From Octopus bimaculoides (taxonomy: Eukaryota): a stretch of 64,000 nt of DNA. Location of the stretch: assembly GCF_001194135.2 (NCBI RefSeq), contig NC_068987.1, positions 1,471,477 through 1,535,476 of the forward strand, in the 5' to 3' direction. Below the pieces are notes generated by a model. The model was given only the letters and a program-made list of their open reading frames with translations. It did not search any database and had not been told where the DNA came from. Every line of letters begins with the position of its first letter. The first letter of the stretch is position 1. Positions 10,438 to 63,470 of this stretch are shown one piece after another. A program made the position numbers and the translations under genes.

Positions 10438-10548
<111 letters not shown>

Positions 10549-10989
10549 GCATGGATTCATATGTGTGTGTGTGTTTTATTTTGAATAAATATAAATAACC
10601 CAGAAATGTAGTATATTTAAGTTGCTCCGCGAAGGAAACATCGCTACATGATGCCGAACAGATGGCACGCTAAATATATTTTTACGAGTGTTTAAAACAT
10701 TCCCATCTCAGAGTGAATTAGATGAAAACGAATGGAAGACGGCTGGTGGGGTTCTTATTTAGATTGTCTTGTATTATTTGGAAACAGCGACAGAAAGTGA
10801 AGTAGAATATGTAACGTTTCGGACAGTTTTTCTTCATTTTGTTAAAACTGACAGGAGGGAAATAAAAAGCAAGAAAGCAGAGTTTTATATCTTCTCTATT
10901 AGAGAAACTGGCTCCGATTTTTTAATATCTGCAAGGCCAAGTCTACATTACAGAAAATTACTATATTCTTATGAACAGCAATATACTAA

Positions 10990-18790: not shown

Positions 18791-18963
18791 ATCTTTGAAT
18801 AGATTTTTTCTCAAACAATTCCACAACACCATGTCTTCTAACAGTGTGTATGCATTTAGTATTATATAGAGGTTGCTATTTAAATTTAATGCCGATTCAA
18901 CTAAGTATGACAATTATATATATTCATATATATGCATATGCATGTGTGTGCGTATATATATAC

Positions 18964-19018
<55 letters not shown>

Positions 19019-22269: not shown

Positions 22270-22371
22270 GCATATGTCGTAGTGGTTAAGAGCGCGGGCA
22301 TATATCGTAGTGGTTAAGAGCGCGGGCTACTAACCCCAAGATTCCCAGTTCAATTCAAAGCAGTGACCCGA

Positions 22372-22407
<36 letters not shown>

Positions 22408-22845
22408 TCAAAATTAAAAGAAGAGTGCCATTTGCTATCTTGTGAACAATATTTCGACATATCGCGTGTTTTCCACTGGTTCAAAAAATAAATTTGTCAA
22501 TCTACTTCATTTTGGTTAATATAGAAAGGATTGAGGTAACTCCTCCTGAAGATATAGTCAAAATATTGTTCACAAGATAGCAAATGGCACTCTTCTTTTA
22601 ATTTTGACTCTCTATCTTCAGGAGGAGTTACCTCAATCCTTTCTATATTAATAATAATAATAATAATACCAACAACAACAACGAAAAATACTTTAAGAAT
22701 GATAATCCAGGTTCAAAATTTCCCCAAGACACCTGATGAAGGCTGGAGGGTATATCAGCCGAAACGTTGTTTTAACAAGATAAGAACATATATCCGTCAA
22801 ATGTAAATAATGAACATAATTCCTCACCTCTTAGTTACAGAACAG
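22270..22845 (+). mobile_element. tRNA-head/(AAT)n/hammerhead SINE-like element with 5' 28-nt duplication and an insertion inside the (AAT)n
   Basis: Head TCGTAGTGGTTAAGAGCGCGGGCTACTAACCCCAAG; body collinear with 53335-53640. Confidence 0.85.
22728..22773 (+). ncRNA. Minimal type-I hammerhead ribozyme
   Basis: GACAC-CUGAUGA-A-GGCUG(loop)CAGCC-GAAACGUU-GUUUU; core intact, one stem I mismatch. Confidence 0.7.
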
Positions 22846-24370: not shown

Positions 24371-25652
24371 CAGAATGACTTACTGCTGTTCACAGCAGTT
24401 ACGTTTGTTATTGACTTTGAAATTGTTCCGTTCAAACGAGGTTTACATCAATCTACATATGAAAAATAGCAGCTTCTGCTGCTGCTGCTGCTGCTACACA
24501 TTTACATACATTTTCATACTTCCTGCTGGTATATCCCTATATATATACATACACATTCATATATGTATATGTGTGTGTGTGTGTGAATATATATACAGGT
24601 ATGTATACACGCACACACACGTATACATATATGCTAGTGTTTGTTTCTATGTCAAGTTGTATATAAAACAGTTTTACATTAAACTGAAAGATTACTGATC
24701 TATTTTGTTAGAGCAGATGTTTATTAAACTTTCACTGGGAAAAAGATGAGAGTGACTTCGAAGTTACATAAGATTGCCCCCCGTTCGTCAGACAGTGCTA
24801 TACCTGATTTCTTTTTGGCTTTATATAATTTTCGGCAAGTCTTTTACGCTTTTGGCTGTCGGTAAGTGGTGGTGCGTGAAATGACAATTCGGTGTGGTGT
24901 AGGTAGGTGGAAGAAATATTGTATACACTATATATATATACAATATATATACACTTCCGGTCACTTCAGCAATGTAACTACACAGGTGCCGCTTCCTCTC
25001 CATTTTTCCTTCTCTCCCTTCTCCGAGCGTCAAGCCAATACGTTTCTTGTGCAGGTCCTTACGTTGGTTTGTTTTTCGTTATTGTATTTGAATTGTTTGT
25101 CTATTTGAATAGGCTATATATATATATATATATATATATATNNNNNNNNNNNNNNNNNNNNNNNNNNNNNNNNNNNNNNNNNNNNNNNNNNNNNNNNNNN
25201 NNNNNNNNNNNNNNNNNNNNNNNNNNNNNNNNNNNNNNNNNNNNNNNNNNNNNNNNNNNNNNNNNNNNNNNNNNNNNNNNNNNNNNNNNNNNNNNNNNNN
25301 NNNNNNNNNNNNNNNNNNNNNNNNNNNNNNNNNNNNNNNNNNNNNNNNNNNNNNNNNNNNNNNNNNNNNNNNNNNNNNNNNNNNNNNNNNNNNNNNNNNN
25401 NNNNNNNNNNNNNNNNNNNNNNNNNNNNNNNNNNNNNNNNNNNNNNNNNNNNNNNNNNNNNNNNNNNNNNNNNNNNNNNNNNNNNNNNNNNNNNNNNNNN
25501 NNNNNNNNNNNNNNNNNNNNNNNNNNNNNNNNNNNNNNNNNNNNNNNNNNNNNNNNNNNNNNNNNNNNNNNNNNNNNNNNNNNNNNNNNNNNNNNNNNNN
25601 NNNNNNNNNNNNNNNNNNNNNNNNNNNNNNNNNNNNNNNNNNNNNNNNNNNN

Positions 25653-26865: not shown

Positions 26866-26901
<36 letters not shown>

Positions 26902-26926
26902 GTACAGAGATACATTCATTTATACG

Positions 26927-27214
26927 TTATGTACATCATTTACATTTGACGGATATTCGTCCTAATCTTGTTTGTTGTTAACACAACGGTTCGGCTGGTA
27001 TACTCTTCAGCCTTCATCAGGTGTCTTGGGGAAATTTAGAACCTGGGTTCTCATTCGTAAGGTATTTTTCGATGTTGTTGTTCATGTCACTGCCTGGAAT
27101 CGAACTCGGAATCTTGGGTTTAGTAGCCCGCGGTCTTAATCACTACGCCACATGCCCGTAGTTAAGTGCACGGGCTACTAATCCCAGGATTCCGAGTTCT
27201 AATCCAGGCAGTGA

Positions 27215-27253
<39 letters not shown>

Positions 27254-27360
27254 TATCGAAAAATACCTTAGGAATGAGAACCCAGGTGCGAAATTTGCCC
27301 AAGACACCCGATGAAGGCTGGAGGGTATATCAGCCGAATCAACAAACAAGAGGAGGACAA

Positions 27361-27364
<4 letters not shown>
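26927..27364. mobile_element. Head-to-head inverted dimer of the tRNA/hammerhead SINE-like element
   Basis: Minus copy 26927-27158 (A box rc 27141-27150, B box rc 27096-27107); 5'-truncated plus copy 27157-27364; both HHR cores mutated (GAACC; CCGAUGA plus deletion). Confidence 0.9.
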
Positions 27365-27428
<64 letters not shown>

Positions 27429-28228
27429 TTATATATAAGTGTGTGTGTGGTCATATTTATGTCTACCTTGATCAGAGTAATTAGTATAAAGGTTAAGGGA
27501 TATAACTCTTACGGCATTGCACCATTTGTATTTTCTTAATTGGTTTGCTGATATCAAATGAAGCCAAATTTAAAGCAAGCGTATCACAAATGAATCTCAT
27601 ATTATTTACAGACTCCCAAAACTATTCAATATTGTATTTAGTATTGTTACCGTTTATAATGGAACGTAAAAACGTTTCGTCATATTTCTCAAACCTGGTC
27701 CTTAACCCAATTTCACAAAACCTGCCGAAAATTAGATACAATTATGATTTTTTTTAAAACCACGTGACGTAACTTCTCTCTCTTTATTGTTTTCTTTGTG
27801 TTTGTTGTTTTCTCTCTTATTTGCTTATTTTCGTAGTTATTTTCAACTTTAAGCATGTCAATTTAATGCATAAACAACCTATTTGATCTTCTGGAGAATG
27901 CTGAACCTGTCGGCCACCTCCATTATTTCTATCTCATCTTCCACCGTGCCATTCTTTAGTCGCGCTCGAAATCAATTCCACTCTTCTTCTTCTTCTTCTT
28001 CTTCCCCACAGTTTGGTTATTCTGTTTTACTATTTTAATTCTCAAATGTTTTTATAAATTGTCTCAAAGTACCTTTGAAATATCTGCTTATACTCTAAGG
28101 CTATTAGGTTCTTGCTAAGTTGATGGATTTAAACGTTATGATGAAAAGAAAAGCGTTTGTAGAACGAAAAATTATTACACTTACACACCTATACACATTA
28201 ACGGAGATATGCATACATATAAACACAC

Positions 28229-38708: not shown

Positions 38709-38840
38709 CAGTTATATATTTAAGAGATGAGGAATTATGTATATTATTTACATTTGACGGTTATTTGTCCTCATCTTGTTTGTTATTAACACAACGTTTC
38801 GGCTGATATATTCTCCGGCCTTCATCAGGTGTCTTGGGGA
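38709..38840 (-). mobile_element. Solo 3' (hammerhead) portion of the tRNA/hammerhead element
   Basis: Reverse complement GACAC-CUGAUGA-A-GGCCG..CAGCC-GAAACGUU-GUGUU (38788-38833) plus terminal CCTCATCTCTTAAATATA; core intact. Confidence 0.85.
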
Positions 38841-39819
38841 ATAATTCGAGAAATATGTAAGTCCTGATCACCCCACCCCCGCCACTGCTCATGTACTGCA
38901 TTTTAGTTATAAGAAGAAAAACTATTTGAAGGATGTCGTAGAGGATGCAATCGACTTACTGTACGTGACAAAAAGAACCACGTGATGATTTTGTGTCCAG
39001 AAGGGATGAAAAGCAGTGAAGTAAAGAAAGCAGTCATACGATGAAGAGTGTTAAACTAGGCAGGAAATCCCAGGAGCCTCTACTGTCAGAGTATCACTGA
39101 TTGCAACTCAGAAAATAACAGAGAATTTGTCTGATTCTCAGTGCCAAGAATTAAATACTCGTAAGTCGAAGTGGGTTTATCTAATAGTACCATGATACAG
39201 TTATGCGGTGATGAGCGGAAGGTGGCCGGAGAAATGATGAGCTCTTTGGATAATTCAAATATAAAAAGAAAGAAGACGCAGGAAAAAAAAGCGAGTCCAG
39301 ACGAAAGATGACCCAACCGCGTAAAGAGGAAGCGAATGCTTTCTGATACAGCATGAAGTTCATATTCGTTAAAGTTGAAAACTTTAAGGTTCCATCTGCG
39401 GCATTTGAACAAACAGTTCATGGATTAAAGAGAAAACGTGATTTTATGCAAGACTTAAATGGCAGATACTGGTAGCAATCTACCTTAACGACATATACTT
39501 CCGGTTATATCGGAAGTTATCGATTCCAAAGCCAGGAATTTTATGACCTTCCTTAAAACAATCTCGATGGTGACTTTCCACCCGTGTGAGGCGGGTTACC
39601 TTTCTTGGCTTTCATTGATGTCAATTCATTTTCATTTCTTATGTATTTATTTCTGTATTTCTTGGAAATTAATGCGTCACTTTACTAAAGATTTTGTCGC
39701 CCACCCACCTCGAGGGTTTGTGCTCATCCCCACTTGCTTTATAAACTGCATCTGTCTCTGAATAAACGGAGATCAGAGCAAAGAAAGCAAATAGATTATT
39801 AGGGCGACAAGAATCGGCA

Positions 39820-53092: not shown

Positions 53093-53245
53093 TATAATCA
53101 GTTCTACATTATTTATATTTGATGGATATTTGTCCTCATCTTGTTTGTTGTTAACACAACGCTTCGGCTGATATACCCTCTAGCCTTCATCAGGTATCTT
53201 AGGAAAATTTCGAACCTGGGTTCTCATTCCTAAGGTATTTTTCGA

Positions 53246-53313
<68 letters not shown>

Positions 53314-53404
53314 TCACTGCTTGGAATCGAACTCGGCATATGGCGTAGTGGTTAAGAGCGCGAGCTACTAACCCCAAGATTCAGAGTTCCATTCCAGGCA
53401 GTGA

Positions 53405-53464
<60 letters not shown>

Positions 53465-53653
53465 TAATATCGAAAAATACCTTAGGAATGACAACCCAGG
53501 CTGGAAATTACCCCAAGACACCTGATGAAGGCTGGAGGGAATAACAGCCGAAACGTTGTGTTAACAACAAACAAGATGAGGACAAATATCTGTCTAATGT
53601 AAATAAAGTCCATAATTCCTCATCTCTGAAATATAGAACTATAATCAGTTCTA
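53093..53653. mobile_element. Head-to-head inverted dimer of the tRNA/hammerhead SINE-like element with candidate 14-bp TSD
   Basis: 5'-truncated minus copy to 53336, full plus copy 53335-53640; TATAATCAGTTCTA at 53093-53106 and 53640-53653. Confidence 0.9.
53517..53562 (+). ncRNA. Minimal type-I hammerhead ribozyme, intact
   Basis: GACAC/GUGUU stem I, CUGAUGA 53522-53528, stem II GGCUG/CAGCC, GAAA 53550, palindromic stem III ACGU, GUU triplet ending 53557. Confidence 0.8.
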
Positions 53654-63407: not shown

Positions 63408-63470
63408 CGTAGAAACATCGAACTCGAAACCTTGGAGTTAAAATGTAGGTCTCTTACCCATCTGAACTAA
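63408..63470 (-). mobile_element. Degenerate tRNA-like SINE head
   Basis: Reverse complement TTAGTTCAGATGGGTAAGAG...GAGTTCGAT (A- and B-box-like). Confidence 0.4.

Follow-up and report, generated by a model that had tools for sequence, protein, structure and literature searches.

The window analysed here, a stretch of 64,000 nucleotides from Octopus bimaculoides (NCBI RefSeq assembly GCF_001194135.2, contig NC_068987.1, positions 1,471,477 to 1,535,476, forward strand), carries six copies of one element of about 300 bp at four loci. The element joins a tRNA-like head to an (AAT)n linker and to a tail that holds a minimal type-I hammerhead motif of the kind described from Penelope-like elements (PLEs). 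It is a real, abundant family resembling short interspersed elements (SINEs) and possessing a Penelope-type tail, and it is not categorically new. The full mechanism proposed for it, in which an abundant non-coding tRNA-related octopus SINE with a PLE-derived 3' module is mobilized by PLE machinery, is assigned a probability of about 0.6. Positions given below are counted from the first nucleotide of the window.

The copies were located by BLASTN of 53335-53640 against the window and by nhmmer with profiles built separately for head and tail; the same query (copy A) supplies the element position numbers (q). Copy A (53335-53639, + strand) is full length, with head, (AAT)n linker and tail (nhmmer E=9e-26 for the head and 9e-53 for the tail). 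Copy B (53105-53334, - strand) is inverted, abuts the 5' end of A and is 5'-truncated at q50 (BLASTN q50-275, 90.4%). Copy C (+ strand) is full length in two parts, 22297-22407 and 22651-22831, its linker being split by a nested insertion of 243 bp. Directly upstream of C, the segment 22270-22296 (+ strand) is a direct repeat of the first ~27-28 nt of the head (q2-28, 96%; nhmmer E=7e-6). Copy D (26927-27156, - strand) has a full head with intact A and B boxes, a short (AAC)3 linker and a tail, and its inverted partner E (27158-27368, + strand) is 5'-truncated at q14 and runs into (AT)n(CA)n. Copy F (38710-38842, - strand) is a tail only, 5'-truncated near q173, with an intact 3' stem-loop. 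The full-length copies A, C and D share the 5' end GGCAT. Element length is about 282-305 bp and the six copies make up about 2.5% of the window. Pairwise identity is 86-92% in a star-like pattern with no substructure, as would be left by one burst of dead copies, each about 6% from a common source. An initial annotation, made from the letters alone, had reported that the element recurs at these places and lacks an open reading frame (ORF) and poly-A, and the searches confirmed all of this: the element has no start-to-stop ORF, Pfam on the window ORFs gave no match to it, and both poly-A and a terminal repeat are absent.

The hammerhead of copy A lies at 53517-53562 (+ strand) and reads GACAC-CUGAUGA-A-GGCUG...CAGCC-GAAACGUU-GUGUU. 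It comprises helix I (GACAC/GUGUU), the core CUGAUGA, an unpaired A, helix II (GGCUG/CAGCC), GAAA and a palindromic ACGU, with predicted cleavage after U53557. The minimal hammerhead ribozymes (min-HHRs) of PLEs have the cores CUGANGA and GAAA, helices I and II with helix I open and short (4-5 bp), an unpaired nucleotide between 9 and 10.1, a G10.1-C11.1 pair, and a palindromic 15.2-16.2 that has no loop 3 and forms dimers (PMC4209133). Several of these traits emerged from the families themselves and were not built into the authors' search descriptor (PMC4209133). The octopus motif shows every one of the published sequence traits (CUGAUGA-A-G...C-GAAA, and GAA-ACGU-U with self-complementary ACGU), so the minimal type-I hammerhead with palindromic stem III called by the initial annotation stands as a description of the sequence. 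A strict descriptor matched once in the window (copy A) and not at all in 200 dinucleotide shuffles. It asked for both cores, with one further base allowed after A9, for at least 4 bp in each of helices I and II with G-C closing helix II, for a palindrome at 15.2-16.2, for U16.1 and for any nucleotide other than G at 17.

A majority consensus drawn from the six copies has the hammerhead motif intact, and the minimum-free-energy fold recovers helices I and II. In each of the five copies other than A, one change disables the motif. In B (53153-53198, - strand) GAAA has become GAAG, and in D (26980-27025, - strand) it has become GAAC. Copy C (22728-22773, + strand) has a mismatch that weakens helix I, F (38788-38833, - strand) has one mismatch in helix II, and E (within 27158-27368, + strand) reads CCGAUGA and has an 11-nt deletion over the cleavage site. 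This is the pattern expected for neutral decay from an intact source.

The arrangement of the copies adds support for mobilization by PLEs. At two loci, 53105-53639 and 26927-27368, a full-length copy stands head to head with an inverted, 5'-truncated copy, with no spacer between them (junctions 53334|53335 for A/B and 27156|27158 for D/E). The arms of the A/B palindrome are 201 nt long and 92% complementary. The truncation points differ (q50 in B versus q14 in E), which indicates that each palindrome had its own origin. On the left (53093-53106) and on the right (53640-53653), the A+B pair is flanked by an exact 14-nt target-site duplication, TATAATCAGTTCTA, and the direct repeat can be extended to 21 nt with 2 mismatches, or to 21-30 nt with mismatches. 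Because one target duplication brackets both copies, the pair was inserted as a single event.

The insertion architecture of PLEs was reportedly treated by Evgen'ev and Arkhipova in 2005. Craig et al. (2021) described PLE insertions with a high rate of 5' truncation, an inverted 5'-truncated copy placed directly at the 5' end, a bias toward microsatellites and, at one end, a 'tail' extension of 30-40 bp (PMC8557442). Both A/B and D/E show the published inverted-copy architecture, and the octopus element also resembles these insertions in its 5' truncations and its lack of poly-A, and perhaps in its proximity to microsatellites. The two differ in scale, since the octopus unit is a 300-bp non-coding SINE whereas a PLE is an element of 3-4 kb encoding a reverse transcriptase (RT) and an endonuclease. 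They differ also in that the PLE partial tandem, or pseudo-LTR (long terminal repeat), upstream of a full copy was not found in the window, where only the 28-nt head duplicate at 22270-22296 precedes copy C. Animal genomes contain thousands of dispersed single min-HHRs that are 'probably related to truncated PLEs', along with some pairs 100-700 bp apart on opposite strands (PMC4209133). The A/B and D/E pairs match these reported opposite-strand pairs. The evidence from both loci with two copies thus supports a stronger link between the element and PLEs than the initial annotation had recognized. The D/E pair lies between (TA)n (26868-26905) and (AT)n(CA)n (27355-27430), a placement that fits the PLE microsatellite bias and is uninformative in so microsatellite-rich a window.

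Long palindromes containing a hammerhead might also be produced by a foldback or miniature inverted-repeat transposable element (MITE)-type DNA transposon with terminal inverted repeats of ~230 bp, or by a retrozyme that spreads via circular RNA. Two of the four loci are indeed long palindromes, but copies C and F are solitary and non-palindromic. The palindrome centers differ (q50 and q14) so that the pairs are not copies of one foldback master, and a 14-bp duplication is atypical for DNA transposons. Retrozymes of the non-LTR type are defined by head-to-tail tandems and circularly permuted copies (PMC7761336), neither of which is seen here. Both readings, excluded in the window by the solitary, non-palindromic and non-tandem copies, are regarded as highly improbable.

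The proposal that the parts belong together depended in the initial annotation on head and tail being linked in most copies, and in the window head, linker and tail are contiguous in five of the six. The linker of copy A is (AAT)19 at 53409-53465 (+ strand), an internal microsatellite whose length varies by copy: D has only (AAC)3, while A and B reach about 20 AAT units. The tail module (53466-53639, + strand; ~171 nt) begins ATCGAAAAATACC, and in the copy alignment this start and its junction with the linker are identical in 5/5 copies. The tail includes the 46-nt hammerhead and then ~85 nt that end in a 9-bp stem-loop at 53574-53625 (+ strand), with the stem formed by AGAUGAGGA (53574-53582) and UCCUCAUCU (53617-53625). 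The stem-loop folds at -11.3 to -11.6 kcal/mol in the consensus and in copies A and F and is lost in the decayed copy C. Because the truncations at q14 and q50 lie inside the head, a single template supplied head, linker and tail, and this supports the view that they are one mobile unit.

The same features bear on the most serious rival to joint mobilization, in which two separate elements, a SINE and a PLE-derived unit that targets (AAT)n, have come to lie side by side through target preference. PLEs have the required microsatellite insertion bias (PMC8557442) and a microsatellite lies exactly between the two parts. However, 13 other (AAT)n loci in the window have no tail, as against 5/5 head-linked loci with a tail (Fisher p ~1e-4). 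The linker/tail junction is the same in all five copies and no tail is followed by (AAT)n. Truncation of B and E falls within the head, with linker and tail still present in both, and a single target duplication serves A+B. The idea that the tail targets (AAT)n on its own is contradicted within the window and attractive only as the origin of the composite; as an account of the present copies it carries very little probability.

The consensus tail is open in frame +1 (for example over 53466-53639) along all 171 nt, or 56 codons, which has a chance of ~0.05 in AT-rich DNA. This frame could be left over from the C-terminal coding end of a parent PLE; no PLE protein matched its translation. The translated sense tail did match two O. 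bimaculoides proteins, in line with the octopus origin of the window: an uncharacterized protein of 51 residues (90% identity) and the N-terminus of 'dystrobrevin beta isoform X1', whereas translation of the antisense tail frame gave no protein matches. Residues 10-32 of the dystrobrevin model (EGWRVYQPKCCVNNKQDEDKYPSK) correspond to the translated SINE tail, hammerhead region included, and this piece of the element in the gene model is exonized or mis-annotated.

The head of copy A occupies 53335-53408 (+ strand, 74 nt), with the A box at 53341-53351 and a degenerate B box at 53384-53395. The A box is TGGCGTAGTGG, at 53341, and the B box GAGTTCGATTCC is intact in copies B and D and degenerate, GAGTTCCATTCC, in A; both boxes were found where the initial annotation had placed them, including the intact B box of the minus-strand copies. 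The two boxes are 44 nt apart, which is the canonical tRNA offset. A promoter pattern made up of TRGCNNAGTGG, 33 nt and GGTTCGANNCC, with up to 2 mismatches allowed, had two matches (copies A and D, two mismatches) compared to none in 100 shuffles. The head is about 65-68% identical to several animal tRNAs, with z ~8 against shuffles. The tRNAs for Arg-ACG, Ile and Thr tie, and identity of the element with the 1994 'OR1' (octopus-Arg) family is therefore a guess. Runs of four T residues (T4) are absent from the sense strand of the consensus, against a window mean of 7.9 per kb for each strand; its antisense strand contains a T5. A T4-free sense strand would be compatible with read-through by RNA polymerase III (Pol III). 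With the default settings ARAGORN called no tRNA, and with relaxed settings only copies C and D were called, at thresholds of 80% and 70% and with implausible structures. A second, more decayed tRNA-like head is present at 63417-63470 (- strand; TTAGTTCAGATGGGTAAGAG ... GAGTTCGATG), where the nhmmer head profile gives a weak match (E=0.024). This head has a different downstream body and is probably another, older octopus SINE family.

A head that fails the tRNA models could be a dead SINE fossil carried by a non-autonomous PLE derivative that is transcribed by read-through or by Pol II. Metazoan retrozymes and PLE fragments are reported to have no promoters of their own (PMC7761336), and an exonized piece in an annotated O. 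bimaculoides mRNA model would mean that Pol II transcripts with the element exist. Set against this, the consensus keeps the A and B boxes at exact tRNA spacing, the three full-length copies start alike at tRNA +1/+2 as is expected of an internal-promoter start, and the sense strand avoids T4 runs. A dead head is considered improbable as an explanation of the family.

Several results weigh against mobilization of a Pol III-transcribed SINE by PLE machinery. The case for Pol III transcription comes from sequence motifs. The Rfam tRNA model did not detect the head at the gathering score or at E<=10, the default ARAGORN search was negative as well, and the T4-free sense strand has a chance probability of ~0.1. 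Only one of the six genomic hammerheads (A) is intact. The Rfam hammerhead models (RF00163, RF00008, RF02275-7), which the initial annotation had suggested applying, detected nothing at the gathering score or at E<=10 in stretches of 571 nt and 431 nt. This miss is probably due to models that describe a helix III hairpin, which the motif does not have. For covariation, another check that had been named, pairing in helices I and II stands at 94.5% over the six copies and compensatory changes number 0 in 10 helix pairs, a count without power because the copies (~88% identity) are near-identical members of one family; it speaks neither for nor against the fold. A clear target duplication is seen at 1/4 loci only. 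An active ribozyme also looks counter-productive for a SINE since cleavage would part the promoter head from the 3' recognition end.

The partner likewise is missing from the window. No RT or GIY-YIG remnant was found there by Pfam on 136 ORFs or by tblastn with 120 PLE RTs (nothing below E=0.05), and no autonomous PLE sharing the tail was found in a search of octopus DNA confined to the window. A PLE RT probe retrieved 6110 PLE-type RTs with up to 72% identity, several of them with GIY-YIG segments; among the 120 matches listed of these 6110, none is labeled octopus. PLE loci from a pearl oyster and a sea urchin contained no min-HHR by the strict descriptor, and scans of viral and metagenome collections for the hammerhead-core and head patterns gave 0 loci. 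One of the 136 window ORFs has a Telomerase_RBD Pfam match at E=0.0015, which is not significant after correction. The RTs of PLEs are relatives of telomerase. In Octopus vulgaris, SINEs account for ~11.6% of the genome, mostly as 893 'unclassified SINE' families, LINEs (long interspersed elements) account for 12.9%, and 30 Penelope families have been recently active (PMC13282606). Active Penelope families in octopus mean that a PLE partner is available in principle.

An ordinary LINE-dependent tRNA-SINE, with a partner of the RTE, CR1 or Dong-R4 type (abundant in octopus), would not require such a partner. The hammerhead would then be captured or fortuitous and the inverted pairs would result from snap-back or twin-priming-like events. 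The lack of a PLE partner, the LINE content of the O. vulgaris genome, the helices without covariation and the lack of an Rfam hammerhead match are all in keeping with this explanation. Most LINE-dependent SINEs, however, carry poly-A or a terminal tandem repeat, and the octopus element has neither. The motif has all the traits of PLE min-HHRs and is absent from shuffles. Classical L1 twin priming, which inverts a template segment other than the one in direct orientation, does not account for these pairs, whose arms both duplicate the same segment (q50-275 versus q1-306). The head-to-head truncated arrangement is that published for PLEs. A LINE-dependent origin is judged unlikely.

The initial annotation had further proposed that the ribozyme defines the end of the RNA, and this is not borne out: every copy that keeps its 3' part extends 50-85 conserved nt beyond the cleavage site. 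Past the predicted cleavage, ~80 conserved nt follow in copies A, C and F, which share the end ...AAATATAGAAC, and ~50 nt follow in B and D. Conserved sequence past the cleavage site indicates that the RNA that was reverse transcribed was uncleaved, or re-ligated. The hammerhead is probably a retained part of a PLE recognition or processing module and not the determinant of the transposed RNA end. Any self-cleavage would be expected to occur in a dimer held by the palindromic ACGU. The role of the hammerhead is obscure even in PLEs themselves (PMC7761336).

Under the proposed PLE-dependent mechanism, Pol III would start at the head, read through the T4-free element and stop at a T-run in the flanking DNA. 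A PLE RT/GIY-YIG endonuclease would recognize in trans the 3' module, which would have come from a PLE. Uncleaved full-length RNA would then be copied into the genome, often with 5' truncation, a step that is visible in the copies. A second, inverted and 5'-truncated copy would frequently be joined to the 5' end with the whole unit inside one target duplication, as the copies also display. The composite probably arose by insertion of a 5'-truncated PLE 3' end into the (AAT)n that formed the tail of a plain tRNA-SINE, an origin suggested because PLEs favor microsatellites.

The element should be considered alongside other small retroposons, among which the schistosome SMalpha/Sjalpha elements and the metazoan non-LTR retrozymes are its nearest known counterparts in function. 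SINEs have been defined as non-autonomous, non-coding elements of <700 bp with a Pol III-derived head and a partner LINE that shares the 3' region (PMC3531059). In length, lack of coding capacity and dispersed retroposed copies with target duplication, including copies 5'-truncated at q14, q50 and q173 (E, B and F), the octopus element agrees with this definition. PLEs are grouped with non-LTR elements in Repbase (PMC5753468).

The combination of a Pol III promoter with a hammerhead has precedents in schistosomes. The elements concerned, SMalpha and Sjalpha, are said to have been described originally by Ferbeyre et al. in 1998 and Laha et al. in 2000. In later sources they are SINE-like retroposons joining a Pol III promoter with a hammerhead (PMC6765202, PMC8490949). 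As portrayed there, they resemble the octopus element in being short (~330 bp), non-coding and dispersed, with a Pol III promoter and a type-I hammerhead, and their host genome also holds PLEs with hammerheads. The SMalpha hammerhead is presented in the same sources as canonical and active in vitro, often found in satellite-like tandem arrays, and able to cut multimers. By these descriptions the octopus element differs in having the minimal PLE-type motif with no loop 3 and an unpaired base before helix II, in being non-tandem and arranged in inverted pairs, and in possessing an internal (AAT)n. Given SMalpha/Sjalpha and the octopus tRNA-SINEs of 1994, the claim of the initial annotation that the element is a new type of SINE is not established.

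The minimal hammerheads of PLE pseudo-LTRs are also reportedly the subject of work by Lunse et al. in 2017. Those examined by Cervera and de la Pena in 2014 share with the octopus motif the same core, a palindromic helix III and a short helix I (PMC4209133). Published min-HHRs have been assigned to PLEs or 'truncated PLEs', whereas the octopus motif belongs to a separate unit of ~300 bp that has a tRNA-like head and lacks PLE coding sequence. Metazoan non-LTR retrozymes (PMC7229834; bioRxiv 10.64898/2026.07.22.740005) are likewise small and non-autonomous with type-I hammerheads, and they have been proposed to use PLE machinery. They are head-to-tail tandems of 170-400 bp with circular RNAs, are reported to be promoter-less and mostly have canonical hammerheads. 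The octopus element differs from them in its dispersed or inverted, non-tandem copies and its Pol III-type head, and no tandem or circularly permuted copies occur in the window.

The tRNA-derived octopus SINEs OK, OR1 and OR2 were described by Ohshima and Okada in 1994, as cited in PMC4758252 and PMC3531059. These families and the 'octopus-specific SINE' of the genome papers share with the element the host group, a tRNA-derived head and a very high copy number. The element is possibly identical to OR1 or OK. OR2 is a CORE-SINE, and no CORE domain is evident in the octopus element. Among the papers searched in full text, none connects a SINE of octopus to hammerheads or to PLEs. Quite possibly the sequence of the family has already been catalogued while its hammerhead and the link to PLEs have not.

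A broader proposal is that one of the main octopus SINE families is a Pol III tRNA-SINE with a PLE 3' module, mobilized by PLEs, in what would be the first documented partnership of a SINE with a PLE. This is put forward tentatively and is doubtful as it stands. If true, the partnership would explain many of the dispersed and opposite-strand min-HHRs of animal genomes, and many 'orphan' min-HHRs would be reassigned from 'truncated PLEs' to a Pol III-expressed RNA in which the role of the ribozyme becomes directly testable. SINEs are defined by their dependence on LINEs, and a PLE-dependent SINE would widen that rule. For studies of the poorly understood PLE cycle, including the origin of inverted and tandem copies, the element would offer a substrate that is small, abundant and easy to assay. 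Should the family prove to be already catalogued and to have a LINE as its partner, the finding shrinks to routine repeat annotation.

Insertion of the PLE type makes ready inverted duplicates and would therefore seed long double-stranded RNA (dsRNA) hairpins. Octopus has exceptionally heavy A-to-I hyper-editing (PMC5625713). If the proposed partnership is true, inverted SINE pairs may feed this editing, high-copy palindromic insertions being a plausible source of dsRNA for ADAR in octopus. The D/E junction at 27093-27210 folds as a long hairpin and has sub-threshold matches to the microRNA (miRNA) models MIR4414 (42.7 bits versus a gathering score of 100) and mir-1263. SINE palindromes of this kind could be mistaken for miRNA precursors in annotation, and they offer ADAR potential dsRNA substrates.

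Elsewhere the window consists of AT-rich non-coding DNA, dense in microsatellites, with 4298 N in gaps inside microsatellites and no real genes. An exact look-up of 10 window ORFs in a protein collection gave no match. The 243-bp insertion in the linker of copy C (22408-22650) contains two interleaved inverted-repeat pairs of ~50 nt, 22408-22458 with 22557-22607 (98%) and 22509-22557 with 22610-22658 (92%). It has no second copy in the window and may represent a foldback element that has been rearranged, or one of MITE type. The hundreds of Rfam matches to miRNA models below threshold (mir-297, mir-3149, mir-466 and others) correspond to (TA)n/(TG)n microsatellites rather than genes, as at 18920-18990, 10489-10568 and 24558-24633.

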